The position numbers and the translations under genes are program-made. This document shows positions 10,232 through 50,900 of a stretch of DNA of 64,000 nt, piece after piece; within the stretch, counting starts at the first letter, position 1; each line of letters opens with the position of its first letter. This DNA is from Paragordius varius (Eukaryota; Animalia; Nematomorpha), in contig OZ176055.1 in the NCBI GenBank assembly GCA_964247055.1, positions 8,556,001 to 8,620,000 on the forward strand, read 5' to 3'. A model generated the notes under the pieces. That model ran no database searches, was not told where the DNA came from, and saw only the letters and a list, made by a program, of their open reading frames with translations.

Positions 10232-11178
10232 ATGAAATTCTCACTCATCAATTTTCTCCTCATTGTTTTGGTCGCTTTGGCTTGCAGTTTGACAAGTATG
10301 GACTTCTGTTTTAGACACACACACACCATTAAAACATAATAACTCAAAACATTATTTTTCAAAGCAAATTATTGATAACTATATATCTGTAATTTTTATT
10401 GACATTTAGCATATGCCCGAGGTATTTTTACAGCTTTTTATCATAAATAATAATTTATATGAATGTCAAAAACAATTAATTGTATTAATAAAATTTTGAT
10501 GAATTTTCCTAGAATCCTTCAAAGTCCCATCCGGCAGGAGAGTCATCCCAGACCCAGAAGATGAAACTGACTCTGATATGAGTAATTATCCAAGCTTAAC
10601 TTATCTTTTAAGAATATTTCAGCTCAAATTTTTTTTTGTATTTCATTATGAATATTTTCAATTTTATTATAATTATTTTTCGTGTTTGAATAGTCTTAGC
10701 TCGTAAGTCCATTATTTTATCCTGAAATTTTTTTTTTAAAATCAATTTAATTTAGAATATATTTATATTTAAAATATAATAAATATTTTTTTTTGAAAAA
10801 CCTTAAAATTTTCTTTATCGTTTTAGGTCAAAATGCCGCTAGACTTATGGTAGCAATGGGTCTCAAAAGTAATGCACATATAATAATCAATCATTAATTT
10901 TTGGATAATTTTATTCAAAAAATTTATTATATTTATTTCCAATTAATTTTCATTTTTCCATAATTTTAGTCCCAAAGGCCGGTATAATACTTGGAACTTT
11001 ATTTTAACTTTAATTTATTTTAACTTTAAATATTTTTATACATAAATTTAATTTAATTTCTTTTTTACAAAATATTTTTAGCCAACAAATACCACAGGTA
11101 CATACAAATTTTCACCATTTTTTACCGTTTGATCATTTTATATAAATTTTTATTTTTATACAATTTAGATCTGAATAA
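10232..11178 (+). CDS. Predicted 70-aa secreted peptide precursor encoded by six small exons
   Basis: Exons 10232-10295, 10513-10581, 10827-10868, 10970-10981, 11082-11097, 11169-11178, all GT-AG and phase-compatible, give MKFSLINFLLIVLVALACSLTKSFKVPSGRRVIPDPEDETDSDMSQNAARLMVAMGLKIPKAANKYHRSE*. Hydrophobic N-terminus; TATAAA at about 10134; AATAAA overlapping the stop. No homology recognised. Confidence 0.62.
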
Positions 11179-28627: not shown

Positions 28628-29143
28628 ATGGCTTTATCATCTCAACCATATTTGAAAGCGGTTGAATCAACCCTATTTGCAGCTCTGTGTTTAACAAATT
28701 TTCCATCGGAATACATAGAAAAACATGATAAACCGGAGATCGAAACTCTATTCAGTCCTGAAATCATTATGCCGGCCCCTATTATCATAGCAAAAAGTGA
28801 AAAAGAACGTGTTAAATTTGAATTATCAATCAATTCGGTACGATTGAGCATACTGGTAAAACAAGCGGATGAAATTGAAAAAATATTGTGCCGAAAATTT
28901 ATGAGACATATGATGATTCGGGCAATAACCGATTTCCCCGTGCTAAGAAAAAGGGTTAGTTCACCCGAATACAGCATAACATTCTTGTTTACACATAAGC
29001 ATATGACAAGTTTCAATAAACAGCGTTTAATTGATTTTGTCATTGCGTTTATGCGGGATGTGGATAGAGAAATTAGTGATATGAAAATTGGATTGAATGC
29101 TCGAGCAAGATTATGTGCTGAAGAATTTCTCAAACTTTTTTAA
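28628..29143 (+). CDS. ARPC4: Actin-related protein 2/3 complex subunit 4 (p20-ARC), intronless and divergent
   Basis: 171-aa ORF colinear with ARPC4: PYLKAVESTL.AALCL.NF, SINSVRLSI.VKQADEIEKILC.KFMR, NARARLCAEEFLKLF. Confidence 0.93.
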   Translation: MALSSQPYLKAVESTLFAALCLTNFPSEYIEKHDKPEIETLFSPEIIMPAPIIIAKSEKERVKFELSINSVRLSILVKQADEIEKILCRKFMRHMMIRAITDFPVLRKRVSSPEYSITFLFTHKHMTSFNKQRLIDFVIAFMRDVDREISDMKIGLNARARLCAEEFLKLF

Positions 29144-29338: not shown

Positions 29339-32300
29339 TTAAAGTGTGGTCGTCGTAACTTTGTTAACACCATGAACCAAGCACAATGGTGGTAGTCCCC
29401 TAGTTAATAATTCTAACTTTTCATGCCAAAGCTGAGCATTTGTGATATTTTGGGATTGGCTACTAACTAAAATAGGCGGACGCGGTAGCAACATAAAACA
29501 AATTGCGGTTGGTAATTCTTTGGAAAGTGAGTAATTAGTTGGTAAAGTATTTTGATCATCAATAGTGGAGGATGCAGAATGAAGGGTAAAATTATTCCCA
29601 TTACCCCCAGTTATGATAGAGGGTTTAGGCAGCACAATATGTTTAAGGATTAATCTATTTACGTAAATTAGATATTCATTATCGGGCAAGGATTTGTATG
29701 AAGTATTCATTTTTGGTTCTACGTTCGTTGATTGTGCTTGGTGTTGAGACGATTTGAAAGTGTTGGTGTGAATGAAATCAGACTCAAAGTTTAGTTTTGA
29801 TTTGGTGACGGATAAATCACCTGGGCCATATTGATTGTTAATGCGCATACCGGAGAAGAGACGACTTGGTGACCAATTAATTACGTGTATTTTGGCAGGA
29901 ATCCTGAGTTGATTCAAAAGGTTCCTTAACGATTGTACAATTTTATGATTGTGCGGGTACGAGGTATGTTTATTGTAACTCGTTTTAACGCCATAAAAAG
30001 CTACAGAAGGGCTTGTAGTAGCAGAATGATTTGTATCAACCGTGTTTAGCATTGTTCTCGATGTCGTTTCACTGCCACTTAGCGAAGGAGTTGCCTGTAA
30101 ATCATCATCTTCCAAGCATAACATAATTCGCAATAAACTGCGTTTGCGCCAACCCCGTTTCATGTTAAGTATACAAGCTAGCTGGAGCATAAAAAGCGTG
30201 GCCGTACATTCCGTATCAACTTCGGGTTGCGCAAACGGATAAAAAAAGTTTTGGGGCCAAACATCAATGTAACACTTTACACCCGTTGCTCTCCTACGAT
30301 TAACCACTGAAGATGGGTATTCAGGATTAAATACGTGGGATAATTGCTTGACCATCGGGTAAAAGGCACGATAAAGTGCATTTGGTGGTTTGGTATATTC
30401 GTGAAACGTTGTATCGATGGAATCGTTAAAATCATTAAAACTATTATTATGACTGATTCCTTCATCATTATTGGAAGCAACATTAGGTTGTTGCCAATCC
30501 AAATCGTCCTCTTTACCCATAGAGGCAAATTTATATTTCGAATCAAATTTACGTTTAAACAGTTTCCGTTTATTCAAGGCGTTATGGAAATTGCGTGTAA
30601 TAACAACATTTTTATGCATGATCAAACATTCACGCACAATATTAACATAATTGGCTAATTCAAATGAATGCTTATCCGAAGGGTTTTCAGTATTTTCTTT
30701 GGGTGCAGAAAATTCATTTTCCAAAAACAATGATTCCGTGTTTTTAACCAATGGATACATACGTGCTAGTTCAGTGTACATGGTTGATCTACCTCTAATT
30801 TTTTCATTTTTAGCACTATTTTTTCCATCCCAAAATCCTAAAACAACCGTATTTGGTTTCATAGCGCCTAAACCCGCAAGCCGTATAAGTTGAACGGCTC
30901 CAGCATACAGAGATTCAGATTCAGTTATTTCAATAAAAGCTTTAACTCTCATGGCATCTATCAAATTCATCCAAAAGGGAATCATAGCATTCACCTTATC
31001 TACAGGCTTTCCATCTAAGGAGAGAAAAAGATTGAATGACAAAAATTTATATTACCTAAATAAATTTTTTAAAAAAACGTCAGGACTATATTTTTTTTTA
31101 AAATAAGGCACAAAGTCAAAAGACACCTATCCATATTTAACAAGCGCGCTTATCAGGCCTTTCGTAAATTGGCCAAAAAATCAAAAAAAGTTAGTTAATT
31201 TTATAAATAAATTACAGTCTCTTATATATATTTTATAAATTGAATTTCTCTCAACATAAATCTTTTTAGCTTTATTTATGTTCAACGCATTATTTTGTAA
31301 AATCGATCTAAATGCAAAAATTACCATTGACTGCTAAATGCCGTGAGCTTTGTTTAATAATGTGTCCGATGACAAATAAACCACTTTTCTTTAAATCGTT
31401 GGCGAAATCAATTAGCTCACAATTTTCCCTTGGGTCTGAGATAAGCAGTAAGATTTGAGGCCTCCAGTATTTAACATGTTGTTTACGTGGATCCAATAGC
31501 AATAAGTATTTGCGTACCTTAACAAGACAAATACCAAATGCATAATTTTGAAAGTTATTGAGTTATTTTAGTTTTAAGCACAATAAGGAACAAATATTCC
31601 TTTTCCTTTATTAATTTTAAAATTTGTCATAACATATAAGATTATATCCTAAAAATAATTGTTATAATTTCGCTTCTATCCATACCTTTTTTTCAATATT
31701 TACAGCGAAATTGGGCTTCAAAAAAACAACAACTCAATTTTTATTATATTATAAATCATAATTAAATAATCCTAAATCCGATAAAACCATAATAATTTTG
31801 TTTAAGATTCAGGTTTAATATGATTTTAAATTTAAATTGTATTGAAAATATTGAATATGGAGTATCAGCTGACCTTTTTTGTAAGATGCTCTTTGCCTCT
31901 TTAATTTTACTTAAATAGCGCTTTTTAAACCACTCTTATTTTTCACAATATCAGGCTTAAGACTGTCCATTTTGTAATATTAAATAACTTTATATATCCA
32001 TTTCTTTTCATCCATTTTGGATTTTTCTCCTTTCTTTACCAAACTCAAATCTTTTTCAAAAAGAGGTTTAAAAAAATGCATATTTGGTGTACCTTTTTTG
32101 TCAAACTAAAAAAGAAAAAAAATTCTTTAATAACCAATTTTTAACCTGATGAAACATAAGGGCTTGACTTAAACTACCCCACGAAGAAGCCGGCGTTTTC
32201 CAATGCAACAGGGAAACTAAAGCCCCACAAATCACTAAACCAAGGGTGGAAAAGGTTGGTGTTACAGCAAACATACCAATCAGGCAGGAAAGAGCTCCCA

Positions 32301-37874: not shown

Positions 37875-39841
37875 ATGACACCTGATGATAATTTTGAGTT
37901 CGATAATGCCATTCTTGAGCAGCAAAGAAATATTGAAAAAGAAGTTTTATCCATATATTTAACACTAACACTAATTTAGACTTCGATTAATGAGTTAATT
38001 GGCCCCAAGTTGGACATTAATTTTCCATTTTACGATGATAACATATATAAGCAAAAAATTAAAGTTAAATCATAATTATTATATTAAAGAATCTCACTAC
38101 CCAATATTCAAGTATACGACATGTTCGAGGTGATGGCAATTGTTTTTACAGAGCTTTTGCATTTTCTTTTTTTGAATATTTATGGAATCATAAACATGAA
38201 ATTTTAAAGTATAAATTTTTTACGCTATTATAATGCAAGATTTACAGAAATATGCGATGCTTATCGAAATTTAATTATAAGTTATGGATTGGCCGAATAT
38301 ATTTTGGATGATTTTTTGGATGCGGTTTTAATGGCTACAAAAGTCGCCGAGGAATCAAATTCCGTTCTATTTCAACTTGAAAACATTTTTAATGATGAAA
38401 CTACCTCAAATTATATAGTCATGTTTTTTAGGTTTTTTACTTAATATATTTTGTAGATTAATAACTTCCTGCTCAATAAAAAACAATGCGGAAATGTATC
38501 AAAATTTTATCGAAGGCTACAAAACGGTTGATGATTTCTGTGCAAATGTAATAATTTTTGTTTTCTTTACCATATTTTATTGCAGAGATTATTTAGATTA
38601 GTTTTTAGACTAAAATCACTGTTTTTAACCGTTTGTAGAACAGAATATATATGATTTTGTTAATTTTTTTTCAATTTAATGGTATTTTAGGCGGTTTAAT
38701 AATAAGGTGTAATAAATGTAAAAGTGCAAAAAATCACGGCACCAGATATTTTTATTTAATTTTCGAAAAATGGATCCTTACTTATATATCGAACATCCCA
38801 AATTTACCCTTGAACATTCGATACAATGTATTAAAAAGGTGAATGTTGGTAAGTGTATTAGAAAGGTGAAAAATTAGAAATGTTTAAGGGTGTTGTAGTG
38901 TTTAGGGGCCAATTTTAGGTGTAAATGGTCTTATTATAATAATAGCATATACTTAATTTACAAGCAAATTTATTAATTTTATAAAATCAGTCTTTAGGTT
39001 TAATATTATTATGTTACATTATTTTCCCTAGTTTGATGATTAACCTAAAGGATATCCTTATAATATAATGAATGGCCAATACCAATTACTTTAATTATTT
39101 GGATACTTATAAAAAATAAATTTAACCCCTTTGTGTTTTAATTTTAAATTTAACTTTTCTTCATACACTATATTTCAAATTTTAATCATTTTAGCTTTAT
39201 TTTTGATTATCCTTAATTTGTTTTAAGTCATAGTGTTTTTCGAACAAATCAAAATTGATGAATGTGGCTATTTTTATATATTTGACTATACATGGCATTC
39301 TTATTATTTACATTGGTATGGAGGGCTATTAAGGTTTATTCATTACGCTTTTTTTGCATACTTTTTATGAATGTTTTGAATCAGGAGTTTACATACTTTT
39401 TTGGCTTTTGCAGCTTAATTAATTCGTTTGGAACTGGCTTTTAAGCATTTTCATATAACCTATTTACAATGTAAGCCTAAAACTCGATTACAATTGCGAT
39501 TTATTATGGCATTATGTATACCATTTACTCTTCAAATCACCCTTGAACAATTCAAAGTCACCTTAAAATATATTATGTGTTTTTTAAAGATTAAAAACTA
39601 CCTATATATATTTTTAAAAATGAAATTATGTTTAAAATTAGAAAAATACGGAAAAAATAATAAACTAAACCATAAAGATATATTTTATATTAATAATAAG
39701 TTAATTAGCCCAAAAACACATAATTTATTTTTATGATAAATTCGAATTGTTCAAGGGTGAATAATTAAAAGTGAATTTTAATTGTAACCTTAATTATTAA
39801 GGTGTGTTTTTTAACAATTTTGAGAAACCATATATTTGATC

Positions 39842-39880
<39 letters not shown>

Positions 39881-40469
39881 TGCTTAAGAAATAGTTTTCA
39901 ATCTTTATGGGGTGGGTCCTACTAATTGGCAAACTTCCTAGTTAACTTTTTTTTATATAAGGAGGATAAAATTAAAAAACGTATAAGACAACTAACTATT
40001 TTAAACATTGTTTTTTCCACATAATCGCATATGATTACAATCTTGAAATATATATATAATTGATGAATGGGATGATAAAAATTCAAATCTCATTTATTTA
40101 ACACAAAATGATAAGTTTTATACGTAAAAAATATAGGTTTTTTGAAAAAGTATGGTGGTTGTCTTTTAGTTTTTTTTACGATTCGTCCTGTATAATCAAT
40201 TTATAATTGCATATGTTTAGGAAGTTGAAGTTATGAACCGTGAAAGTGATCATATCCATATTTTAGCACTAACAACTGCTTTGGAATGTTGTACCCTTAT
40301 AGAATATTTAGATCGTTCTTCCTCTACGTCGACGACGACAAATGCCACCGACGCAATGACTCATCATATATTCGCTGCAGGGCCTGATGAAAAAACTCAC
40401 CCTAAAGTCTACTTACTTTACCGCCCTGGTCATTATGACATTATATATCCTGTTACACGCGCTGTTTAA
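37875..40469 (+). CDS. OTUB1: Otubain deubiquitinase
   Basis: Exons 37875-37943, 37980-38063, 38090-38208, 38240-38431, 38457-38547, 40221-40469. Catalytic RGDGNCFYRAF and YRPGHYDI intact; also ESDHIHILAL. Confidence 0.95.
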
Positions 40470-40570
40470 ATATAATGCATTACACCTCTAATTCACACTT
40501 GAACTTTTTCAAATTCCCCCTAAAAATAAATTACTCTGTGTTTTTTGGGGGCTAGTTTAACTTATCATTA

Positions 40571-40778
40571 CAATCATGTGTGTTTAGAATTGTCAAACAT
40601 ACGTTTTTAATTGGTTTGTTTTACTTTGTTTTTAATTGTTAACAATAAATAGGCTATTAATATTTTAAGGCTTAAAAATGCGCATGTTGAAAGTTGACAC
40701 ATCAAACAGCATAACAACTAAAAACAATTTAAAATCAATTAAAAACGTATGTTTGACACTTCTAAACATACATGACTG
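40571..40778. mobile_element. CAGTCATG-type MITE nested inside a family A MITE (about 40488-40914)
   Basis: TA-flanked inverted ends CAATCATGTGTGTTTAGAATTGTCAAACATACGTTTTT / AAAAACGTATGTTTGACACTTCTAAACATACATGACTG. Confidence 0.7.
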
Positions 40779-41111
40779 TAATAAGAAATGTTTCCCTATC
40801 GCATATCTATATTATGTTAATTTAAACAAAGTTTTATAAATGTTTTTTGATTCAAAAATATATGATCATTTTTTGGGTGAATTTGAAATTAAGGATGTTG
40901 TGAGGTGTAAATGGTGTACATATATATATCAATAAATTGATTTATATGATGGTTGTAATTCAAATATTAACAATAATATAAAAATACTATAGTATATATA
41001 AAATGTATATTAATCAACATACTACAAACGTACAATGAATGCTTGAATGTGTATATTTAAATAACACTGATTTATTATTTGTGAGTTTGATGAATACAAA
41101 ATATTATAAAA

Positions 41112-43546
41112 TTATTTTTTTCCACGTGTACCCCAAAAGCCTTCGGGCGGGCCCCGTTTTCCTTCGAAATCCATCAATAGGTTACTTAAAGCTGTCGCCC
41201 TAGCCTTTTTCCGTAACACATGAATTAAAGGGATAGAGTATGCATTATATTCGTATCCTTCATGTTCTTTGTTGGCGTCAACTAATTCTGTAAAAAAATT
41301 TATGTGATCACCCCAAATTTTTATTTTTTAGAGTGCAGAATAATCATTGGTAAGCTAAATTTACCACATTTTATAGTTTATAAATATGATAAAATTATTG
41401 GATAATTGTTATTTTGAATGCAAACTATAATATTAGAAAAAAATCAGCTTTAACACTTCATAAACTTATAAATTTTTACGTGAAGAATACAATTTTAAAG
41501 GGGCTTTTTTAATAAATCACAGTAGTCAAAGGTATTTTGGCTAAATATATATATATGTAAACATACCATTTTTATATTGAACACAAAATTTTACTATTTG
41601 ACATTTTACAACCTTCATGGTTTAAAATTTGGATATAATTTTGACAATTGAAAAAACAGCTTATATAATTAAACAATTACCCAAAATTTGGTGAAAATTA
41701 CATATAAAAGCCTGCTATTTTTAAGAATTTTAAAAATTTGTGGCAAAAAGATGGAAATCAAGATTAATACAGCTAGGCCATAGCAAATTGGCCTAATATC
41801 ATAGATATTTTTTACATTCACGGGTTAAACTACCCCAAAGATAAAAGAAGTTTTAATAATTAATTTTTCTTATTTGAGACGAATAGTTAGAAAATACTCA
41901 AGAAATATTGATTTTAAATATATAAATAAAAATAACCTGAATTCTCAAGCAAATACCGATTTAATTCTCTTCTGCGTCTTTTACCTGTATTAATAAATTT
42001 GTAAATTTTAGATAACCCTTTTATGTTTAATAAAAGCATTATATAATTGAAATATATTTTAGAATATATAATAAACTCTTCGTCATTCTTATGAGATAGT
42101 TACGCGATAGGCAAATTTTAGTACCAGATAATTAGTCTAGGACACATACTTTTTATTTAAATACCATCATGTCTAATTTTTGGGTTTAGTTTTTAAAGAA
42201 ATTTTTGGACAGAGGGACGCACAGGCTTTTCCGATAAAAATTTTAAGGTGAAAACGCCATATAATAGATATACATCCAAAAAAGGAAATCCGCAAAACCG
42301 ATGATTATTAGTATTTTGTATGACACATTTTAAAATATGGACTAAAGGCTCAGGATTTTTATCATATGTTAATAATAATGTAATAGGTTAAAAAACCAAG
42401 TATATTAGGGCAAATTAGTTTTGGATTGTGCATGTAATGGTTTTCGCAAAAGTTTTAGTTATCGAGTTGTTAATGCCAAAACGTATGTATATTATTGAAT
42501 TATGCTCAGCCTATATTAATTTTACCGGATTAGGCTAGAACACCTAGAGTTACACCAAAATAATGATTTTTTGCCAAAAAATTATGGGACAATTATCGTT
42601 GAAAAATGAAAGTCATAAACTTTGACAAATTTTTTGACATGCAACTATTTTAATTTAGAATAAAGTTTCGACCGAAGGCATAAACTTTAAAATTTTGCAT
42701 GAATCCGTATTTCATTTCAAAATATCCAAAGTTTTATACTATTTTTACATAAATAATGATTTGTTAAATTTTAAGACTTTTAGGGAAACTACTTTTTTGG
42801 AACATGTAGTATTATAAATTTATTATACTTGAGTGTAACCCTGAAATTCTTTAACCAGATTCAAACTTTAATCTTTGGCTATCTATTTCTCCAAAAAACG
42901 CACAAAAAGGAGGAAGAAAATGCAATCATTCATACGATTTATCTTACTCTATATTCTTAAATATAAACAAAATTTGATGATAGTCTTTATATTTTAATAA
43001 TATGTTTAAAGTTCATTTAAAGATAATTAAATACCCAAGAATATTCAAACTTTGACGCTTTACTCATTGCCTTATTTATATTTGTAAGCGTAATATACCG
43101 TAATTCAGGCCTAAGAAAGGTAGGAGTTTTCTGTAACCTTCCACATCAATTTCATTGGGTTTTTCCATTTCACGGTTTTGATTATGTTTTGTGCCCGAAG
43201 AAACATATTCCAAGGGGGACTATTTTTAATTATTCAATTTGGCCNNNNNNNNNNNNNNNNNNNNNNNNNNNNNNNNNNNNNNNNNNNNNNNNNNNNNNNN
43301 NNNNNNNNNNNNNNNNNNNNNNNNNNNNNNNNNNNNNNNNNNNNNNNNNNNNNNNNNNNNNNNNNNNNNNNNNNNNNNNNNNNNNNNNNNNNNNNNNNNN
43401 NNNNNNNNNNNNNNNNNNNNNNNNNNNNNNNNNNNNNNNNNNNNAGAGATCATTAGTTATAGTTTATCTACCTTAAATTGGGCCATATTGCTTTGACATA
43501 ATACTGTAAGAATAATTAGATTTGTAAATAATACTAAGCCAAACAT
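41112..43546 (-). CDS. Tk: Tachykinin-related neuropeptide precursor (about 139 aa, more if exons lie in the gap)
   Basis: Exons 43546-43472, 43219-43099, 41984-41937, 41287-41112, all GT-AG and in phase: MFGLVLFTNLIILTVLCQSNMAQFK/SPLEYVSSGTKHNQNREMEKPNEIDVEGYRKLLPFLGLNYG/KRRRRELNRYLLENSE/LVDANKEHEGYEYNAYSIPLIHVLRKKARATALSNLLMDFEGKRGPPEGFWGTRGKK*. Contains a signal peptide, basic cleavage sites and FxGxR-G-KK. Confidence 0.82.
43245..43444. other. Assembly gap (200 N)
   Basis: Run of N; lies in intron 1 of the neuropeptide precursor. Confidence 1.
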
Positions 43547-47900: not shown

Positions 47901-50900
47901 CAATGACATACAGTCCATTTTCATGCATAATTCCAGAATTCAGAATACCGCTAAGGACTAGTCCACAACACTCTTCAACCAAAAATATTTCATCAATCTA
48001 AACACGTAATGTGAAATGCAGTAGTTTGAAATAAAAGTAATGTAAAAATGATATTTATGAAAATAATATTTTATTATAAAATTAATAATCCGTATATTCT
48101 AAAATGTATAAAAAATATAAAAAAAATTTGGATCTAAATGATCCTTAATCAATATATGCATAAATAAAAAAAATAAAATATTTGTAAAATTATATATGGT
48201 GAAAAAACGATTTGCGTCCTAGAACTAATAGGAGATGCTAACAGTAAAAAAAACTTTTAGGCGGATATAAAAAATTACGTTGATTAAAAGTGTGTTTAGT
48301 TTAATTTACGTTTTAATTAATTTGTAATTTTATCCATCGATTTGTATATATATACATATAAATTACAAAAGTCAAATCTTTGGCAAAAAACTATACTGTA
48401 ATATAAAAATACCAAAAACTCGGCTAAATCATTGCATTCCACATCAATTAAGAATTTATCCGTATTATTGCTATTTTTTAAAGGGTTATTATTTGGTAAT
48501 AATTGTTGATTTTCAATAGCACAAGAGGAGGTAGGAAAATTATCAGTATTTTGTTCACCTAAACTCTTAGATGAATAAGAAAGTTTGCGTTTTCGATCAG
48601 ACTCTAAATATTTTACAAACAAGAGAATGCAAATATAATTTAATAAAATTTTTCGCTTTTACCATAAATACAAATTAAAAATTTCGTATTTGATACAAGA
48701 TAAAATGCAGTTTAATTTTTATAAATTTTTAATTCAATATTAAATCGCATCAAAGCCATCATTTTTTGAACTAATAGTTAAAATAATTTGTGAAATTCAA
48801 CAATATATGTGATATAACAATATTTTTTTGTCATACGGTTTTTAATCTATTTATCCTTAATTGGAACAAATATCACTCATTATTAACTATAAACTTTTAA
48901 AATACCATTTTATTTAAGGTTAAAACAGCCATAAAGAGTTTTTGATTTAATTTATTATATATAAAGTAAATATACACTTTATTCACAAAAAAGTAAAGAT
49001 ACTTATTTCCACTTTGCTCGAGGAAGAGGCCAGTACTAATGATTCTTGAGATGTTGTCGAGTCTGAGTTTGATATGTTATTACCAAGTTTATTATCCCCG
49101 TTTTTATTTTGATTGGAATTAAAATTGTTTAGGGGAAGTAAAAGTTGTAGGAATTTAGTTAATATATCCAAATGATAACCGGTTACACACGAAATTTCAA
49201 TGATAGGTACTATACGTGTACAACCATTACAAATGTTTTGTCCTCCTTTAGCCATATTGTAGGCTGCTGTGAAACCCTGATCAAAATTAGTTATTAACAG
49301 TGGGACCTTATTTATGTTTGTAAGTGCTTCAATGATAACATCACAAGTTGTTAAGGAGGTGGTATTTTTATTGCTTTTGTCATTTGAGACTGAAATATTT
49401 GGTGACTTTAATGTCGAGTTTTGAGAGTCTGACGAGGTTAAATTTGGACTTATTAACATTGTCGGTGTCGAAGGTATTGTTAAAGAACCATCTTTCCGAT
49501 CACACTTTGTTATGATGATAAAAAGGGGTAAGTTTAGTGCTAGGGTAAGACCTAAATGTTCTCGTGAAGTTCCAACTATTAAGAAATATATATATTTTGC
49601 GTCAAAAAGAGACAACCAGAAACGTTTTTGTTCAGTTGTTAAGGGTATCTGTTCCAATTAAATAGTTTCGTTCTCATATATATTTTTTAAAAAATGGTTT
49701 CAAACTCAATGGTGGTTAGAAAATTTTTTTTATATTCTTTTGAATTTAGATGCCATTTTACGTTAAGATAATCGATTGTCTAATTTTACTGATCTTAATA
49801 AGGATGATGAATAGCCAAAAAAGCAATAGGGGAATATTAAAAATTTTCTGTACCTTTGACTGAAATATCCATGAAAAACACGAACAATAACAATAATAAT
49901 TGAAAAAATAAAAAAATCTAATTTTTGCGCTTTCGAAAGCGTTTTTTAAAACCAAAATGAGCCTTAAAGCTTATGGTTTCACTAAAACCATTTCAGTAAC
50001 AAAAATCTATTTTAAAAAAGGTAAAAAAGATTATAAAATGTGCAACCAATTTTTTTAATATTTACATACCTAATCCTTGATGATCATCGATAAGAAGCAT
50101 TATATAATCGGGCGAATAATTAGCAAGGCCAAACAAAGTAGTTTTTTGATATTTATAAAAACCAGCGAGATCCAGGAATGTAAGAAGTTTGGTTGATGTT
50201 TCATACACCTCTTCCACTGTTCGGGGTCCTTTGTAATTTATTAGCTAAAAAACAAATAAGATAAAGTTTTGATTAATTTCTTAATTATATATCAGAGGCT
50301 TACAATCAATTTTAAGAGCTTATATATAAATATAAGCCTTTACTTGATTTAATAGTAGTAAAAATCAACAAAAAACGTTATTACTACATCTCTTTTGTAG
50401 TCAAACACTTTTAAATCCTATTTAGCGAGGCATGTTTAGCCAAATTCGAAAAATCGCAAACATTCATTTCCATTATTCATACTAAAAGCCTAAGTCTTTA
50501 TAAACTTTTCGGCTTTTAAAGCCTAGATAAATACTAAAAGGCGCCCCTCTTCCCTACCTGGCCATCATCATCGAAACCTATAACGTCAATGCTTATGCTC
50601 GATGTTTTGCCAGACTCGACCTCATGAGCATGGCGAAATAAGCCAAGTCGAGCACTCCCCTTCCCATCATCAAGGTCTCCACGGGTTAGGACTCCAATCA
50701 TGGTTGATTTACCGGAACCGTGGTTACCTAACACAGCCACACGCAAATCTATAAACTATATAAAGTAAAAGAATTATAATTACGAATAAAAAATTTTTTT
50801 ATCTATAGTTGTAGGTTACAAAAGAGGAAACGTGGATATTGGTTATACAGACGAGTGTATTACATATTTTTCATATAGTCGAATAAATTATCGATTAAAA

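Follow-up and report, generated by a model that had tools for sequence, protein, structure and literature searches.

The locus and its gene model

We analysed a window of 64,000 nt (the whole stretch of Paragordius varius DNA, GC ~27%) in which a gene predicted to encode a tachykinin-type precursor lies on the minus strand, between a gene for an OTUB1-like otubain (Pfam Peptidase_C65) and a GTPBP2-like gene. Four exons join in frame into a predicted precursor of 139 amino acids plus a stop codon (420 nt in total, with no internal stops in a scripted translation). Every intron of the gene has a GT donor and an AG acceptor, and the exon phases are 0, 1, and 1. An earlier note on this DNA had proposed four minus-strand exons spliced in phase, and all four were found. 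The features, all on the minus strand, are as follows:

43472..43546, minus strand: exon 1, coding; 75 nt, ATG, 25 codons; signal-peptide-like; phase-0 donor (exon AG, intron GTAGAT)
43220..43471, minus strand: intron 1; encloses a 200-N assembly gap (43245-43444) and may hide an exon
43099..43219, minus strand: exon 2; 121 nt, phase 0 to 1; spacer, RK site, body of LLPFLGLNY (43126-43100), first base of a Gly codon
41937..41984, minus strand: exon 3; 48 nt, phase 1 to 1; completes the Gly codon, then KRRRR (41982-41968)
41112..41287, minus strand: exon 4, coding; 176 nt; acidic spacer, RKK, possible ARATALSNLLMDFE-amide, KR, tachykinin peptide, G-KK-stop
41204-41160, minus strand: possible third product, ARATALSNLLMDFE-amide, with its Gly; in exon 4
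41121..41153, minus strand: predicted tachykinin-related peptide GPPEGFWGTR plus the amide-donor Gly; KR upstream at 41159-41154, KK-stop after
41071..41076, minus strand: candidate polyadenylation signal AATAAA, 36 nt past the stop; a consensus match only, of a kind frequent in AT-rich DNA

The predicted N terminus of the precursor is signal-like by hydropathy (Kyte-Doolittle maximum of 2.43 in an 11-residue window) and by the -3/-1 rule, which exon 1 satisfies after residue 17 or 19 and also after residue 14; the signal peptide proposed by the earlier note is thus borne out at the level of prediction. The ATG of exon 1 has an A at position -3 and an in-frame stop five codons upstream. GC content is approximately 0.34-0.42 in exons 2-4 (values for exons 2 and 3 were taken with near-final boundaries) and 0.20-0.26 in the introns, and the GC3 of the gene, 0.33, falls within the range of neighbouring housekeeping exons (0.24-0.44). 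Order-3 Markov simulation of the window (150 copies) yielded the motif FxGxRG[KR][KR/stop] by chance at a rate of 0.007 per window, and in no copy was the motif preceded by [KR]R at a distance of up to ten residues. The in-frame four-exon model is far above chance expectation.

Neighbouring genes

The otubain gene (37875-40469, plus strand) is convergent with the tachykinin-type gene, and its ATG lies ~54 nt from that of an SLC12A9-like gene on the opposite strand. A MITE-like inverted repeat (40562-40787), with 56-nt arms that are 89% complementary and nested 23-nt arms, separates the 3' end of the otubain gene from that of the tachykinin-type gene. The P-loop of the GTPBP2-like gene (50537-50755, minus strand) reads GNHGSGKST, with His-Gly at the variable positions. 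Elsewhere in the window, a signal-peptide-like ATG exon (10232-11178, plus strand) is followed by several tiny AG..GT segments in AT-rich DNA.

The window also contains a gene for ARPC4 that is 72% identical to ARPC4 of the nematomorph Gordionus sp. m RMFG-2023, whereas all other matches are at most 59% identical. The arrangement of ARPC4 on the plus strand with SLC12 on the minus strand is common to the window and Gordionus. By these two features, the window most likely comes from a horsehair-worm genome. The Gordionus ARPC4 locus (L001), examined for a tachykinin orthologue, ends within the SLC12 gene. Both hairworms encode ARPC4 in one uninterrupted reading frame (28628-29143, plus strand, in the window; 10001-10516 in L001), and hairworm ARPC4 is only ~50-59% identical to the retrieved non-hairworm relatives, an unusually low value for such a conserved protein. 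In the window, the final exon of the SLC12A9-like gene encodes ~567 amino acids (29339-31042, minus strand), as against ~400 in Gordionus (L001 10669-11871, minus strand), with Ser/Thr/Asn-rich insertions. In Gordionus, reverse-transcriptase-like retroelement open reading frames lie within an intron of SLC12 (L001 12928-14991, minus strand).

Predicted peptide products

The precursor ends in KR-GPPEGFWGTR-G-KK-stop, that is, in a C-terminal FxGxR-amide sequence with its Gly donor and basic cleavage sites, and both the position and the letters are those that the earlier note had given. A second predicted product, absent from that note, emerges at the junction of exons 2 and 3, where splicing yields RK-LLPFLGLNY-G-KRRRR and the intron interrupts the Gly codon. 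LLPFLGLNY-amide is probably a second amidated product, as predicted from these sites, and the fact that splicing creates a clean amidation signal provides independent support for the exon 2/3 junction. If the 48-nt exon 3 is skipped, the frame is kept and the amidation signal of LLPFLGLNY is lost; from this frame-keeping skip, exon 3 could be optional. The third candidate, ARATALSNLLMDFE-amide, may be a mere spacer.

LLPFLGLNY combines an FxGL sequence as in vertebrate tachykinins with a PF dipeptide as in many natalisins; its Phe is at position -6 and it has no terminal Arg or Met. Exon-wise Pfam searches, searches of sequence and structure databases, and a comparison with the 105 FxGxR peptides of the retrieved proteins all left it unplaced.

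Probable assignment to the tachykinin family

The exons were searched singly rather than as a joined protein. Exon 4 gave 12 matches among 1.84 billion representatives (E<=0.001), 11 of which are precursors of FxGxR-amide peptides, and the remaining one is an unrelated repeat protein. Two matches are named as tachykinins, namely the Periplaneta preprotachykinin (1e-7) and Anthonomus 'tachykinins', and a protein from the annelid Paralvinella (P0026) is also among them. E-values of the multi-copy matches are inflated by repeats, and the similarity is limited to the ~15 residues of the peptide unit. The closest match found, P0028 (Logan run ERR12040025), is an unnamed protein of 95 amino acids with two PPQGFWGxR-amide peptides, one of which, GPPQGFWGSR, is the nearest peptide to GPPEGFWGTR (8 of 10 residues identical); annelid and insect tachykinins reach 7 of 10. 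As in GPPEGFWGTR, Gly precedes Phe in 97 of the 105 FxGxR peptides, whereas P0028 supplies the only two with Trp at x1, the first variable position of FxGxR, and no named insect contributes any; Thr at x2 was seen in six. Tachykinins are typically ten residues long with Pro at position 2, and GPPEGFWGTR agrees with both.

Several searches returned nothing. Pfam gave no match for any exon of the gene, and its Lem_TRP model likewise misses P0028 and the annelid protein; PDB sequences and the ESM Atlas yielded nothing usable for these exons. The search of 1.84 billion representatives with exon 4 did not recover a hairworm orthologue, and no hairworm protein appeared in homologue searches in which exon 4 was aligned to its tachykinin relatives (candidates of 52-166 and 77-245 amino acids); these are weak negatives. 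Nematodes possess a tachykinin system, NLP-58/TKR-1/2 (PMC11004728), and a survey of priapulids and rotifers contains a tachykinin alignment, so that a tachykinin is to be expected in a hairworm.

The exon 4 matches and the peptide comparison back the claim of a tachykinin-type precursor. We consider it likely, with a probability of roughly 0.78, that the gene encodes the worm's own tachykinin-related neuropeptide, whose FxGxR-amide would act on the worm's TKR-type class A GPCR as a neuromodulator or myotropin. By the standard neuropeptide pathway, the precursor would enter the secretory route, prohormone convertases would cleave it at RK, KRRRR, RKK, and KR, a carboxypeptidase would then trim the products, and PAM would amidate them. 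The predicted products would be GPPEGFWGTR-amide, probably LLPFLGLNY-amide, and perhaps the third peptide.

Tachykinin or natalisin

The gene might instead be of natalisin type, or its precursor might be a mixed one in the style of tardigrades and the spider mite, carrying both a tachykinin and a natalisin; LLPFLGLNY-amide would then be a second, degenerate ligand. The FxxxR-amide ending, often FWxxR-amide, by which natalisins are recognised is present in GPPEGFWGTR, and FWxxR-amide is the natalisin motif in Lepidoptera and Hemiptera (PMC4730192); this ending does not discriminate between the families, however, and motif models do not tell them apart. Bombyx NTL6 ends in PFWGSRa, natalisins of Varroa carry a Gly before the Phe as GPPEGFWGTR does, and the PF dipeptide of LLPFLGLNY is found before the C-terminal motif in many natalisins. 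Residues of the (D/E)PF type before the motif are absent from the hairworm peptide, in which EG precedes F, although mite natalisins lack them too. Against a natalisin, LLPFLGLNY does not have the terminal Arg and has its Phe at position -6, natalisins have been reported only from Panarthropoda, every named match is a tachykinin, and the xPxGF start of GPPEGFWGTR resembles tachykinins. The last three observations favour the tachykinin side, and we regard a natalisin or mixed precursor as unlikely.

The question of host mimicry

The earlier note suggested that, if the organism is a parasite, resemblance to host tachykinins would be worth testing. The organism is most likely a parasite and its peptide matches some insect tachykinins at 7 of 10 residues, but nothing tested favours mimicry. 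The corresponding explanation is that of a parasite effector: the peptide or its precursor would be released into the insect host, act on host tachykinin receptors, and contribute to erratic or water-entering behaviour. Several points speak for it. Hairworms manipulate their hosts by a mechanism that is still unknown (PMC12456768), at least four lineages have evolved tachykinin doppelgangers (PMC13311285), insect tachykinin receptors can be promiscuous, and the tachykinin in jewel-wasp venom is active in the brain of the cockroach. However, the likeness to insect tachykinins is explained by shared ancestry, and known mimics copy the motif of their target (FQGMRa, FxGLMa), whereas the Trp at x1 of the hairworm peptide is rare among the retrieved peptides. 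Furthermore, PFW(A/G)NR-amides left the honey-bee tachykinin receptor inactive, and neither a second tachykinin gene nor signs of host origin were seen. An effector role is very unlikely in our estimate, and so is the broader reading in which the tachykinin or LLPFLGLNY-amide is released into the insect host and, through host peptide receptors, helps to drive the jump into water; if true, this would put names to the ligand and the receptor behind a classic case of host manipulation that lacks an explanation. Horizontal transfer from an insect host was considered separately and is not favoured, given the native GC3, the presence of introns, and the non-insect architecture.

The assembly gap and the number of tachykinin copies

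The first intron contains a gap of 200 N (43245-43444), with 27 nt read after the exon 1 donor and 25 nt before the exon 2 acceptor. The gap lies wholly inside the intron, and the reading frame is therefore independent of its length. Its flanks do not overlap, and their longest common word is 11 nt. Signal-like phase-0 first exons were found at 3 loci in 128 kb of strand (~1 per 43 kb). That the model is a chimera, with exon 1 taken from another gene and joined across a scaffold gap, or that the locus is a pseudogene or a product of chance, is very unlikely: although the gap letters are unread and both flanks end within 27 nt of the exons, exon 1 agrees with exon 2 in strand and phase, exon 2 has an in-frame stop just upstream and no signal sequence of its own, a signal-like phase-0 exon would fall within 150 nt by chance in ~0.4% of cases (a rough estimate from the density above), and frame defects are absent.

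In its 5' part, the otubain neighbour has frame-restoring GT-AG introns of 36 nt (37944-37979), 26 nt (38064-38089), and 31 nt (38209-38239). With micro-introns of such lengths, both flanks of the gap could be near-complete micro-introns around an unread exon. The gap may therefore conceal an exon, including further tachykinin copies, and the single copy is a minimum count. In the read letters of the gene there is one copy of FxGxRG[KR], with no other in any of the six frames. As candidates for additional copies, we tried single cassette exons in the read introns, and none of the 15 open ones adds a tachykinin. The earlier claim of only one canonical copy stands for the read letters.

The same note had called both the single copy and the Trp at x1 unusual, and here we differ. 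Several copies are customary in tachykinin precursors without being obligatory. Tachykinin copy number spans 1-15, with tardigrades at the low end and cockroaches at the high end, and each tardigrade precursor holds one tachykinin and one predicted natalisin (PMC6880623). TK-1 of the tardigrade Hypsibius is AKPSGFWGARa (PMC6880623), which, like GPPQGFWGSR of P0028, has Trp at x1. Both features are thus already known from a second ecdysozoan outside the arthropods, and the low copy number would represent a compact form of the precursor, known from mites as well as tardigrades. Thr at x2 also occurs in honey-bee AmTRP4.

Novelty and implications

A literature search, from which subscription papers were largely excluded, found no described tachykinin in Nematomorpha. 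The gene appears to be a real and expected member of the tachykinin family that has probably gone undescribed, and it seems to fill the nematomorph gap in the family. As a predicted precursor with one tachykinin ending in GFWGxR-amide, it would support this compact type as an old ecdysozoan form and would bear on the timing of the split between tachykinins and natalisins. It also offers a ten-residue, easily synthesised candidate that could be tried on receptors of both worm and host, in a case of manipulation whose mechanism is unexplained. Any insect parasite with a tachykinin of its own allows the same test, and the presence of the gene is thus expected and unsurprising. Host mimicry finds no support in our results, which describe an ordinary-looking member of the tachykinin family together with one unplaced companion peptide.

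Comparison with known systems

In the sister phylum, C. elegans has a tachykinin system, NLP-58/TACH-1 with the receptors TKR-1 and TKR-2 (PMC11004728), a likeness at the level of the system. The exocrine tachykinin mimics (Ampulex venom tachykinin, sialokinins, eledoisin, and OctTK) are likewise made by parasites or predators of animals with tachykinin receptors; in contrast to them, no duplicated gene, gland expression, or copy of the host's commonest motif is on record for the hairworm. Natalisins such as Bombyx NTL6 (PFWGSRa) and those of Varroa (PGFVGARa) are comparable in the FWxxR-amide ending, and the hairworm peptide differs in having no (D/E)PF. The Periplaneta preprotachykinin, Paralvinella P0026, and P0028 share with the hairworm precursor a KR-xPxxGFxGxR-G-KK/KR unit, acidic spacers, and a predicted signal peptide, whereas the retrieved protostome precursors contain 2-13 copies of the peptide and the hairworm precursor contains one in the read letters.

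Tardigrades, like hairworms, are non-arthropod ecdysozoans. They have two tachykinin precursor genes, whereas one was seen in the hairworm, and their second peptide is a predicted natalisin, whereas that of the hairworm ends in FLGLNY-amide without Arg. Yet in peptide content the hairworm and tardigrade precursors (e.g., that of Hypsibius dujardini TK-1, AKPSGFWGARa; PMC6880623) are alike: each combines one tachykinin that ends in GFWGxR-amide with one other peptide predicted to be amidated.
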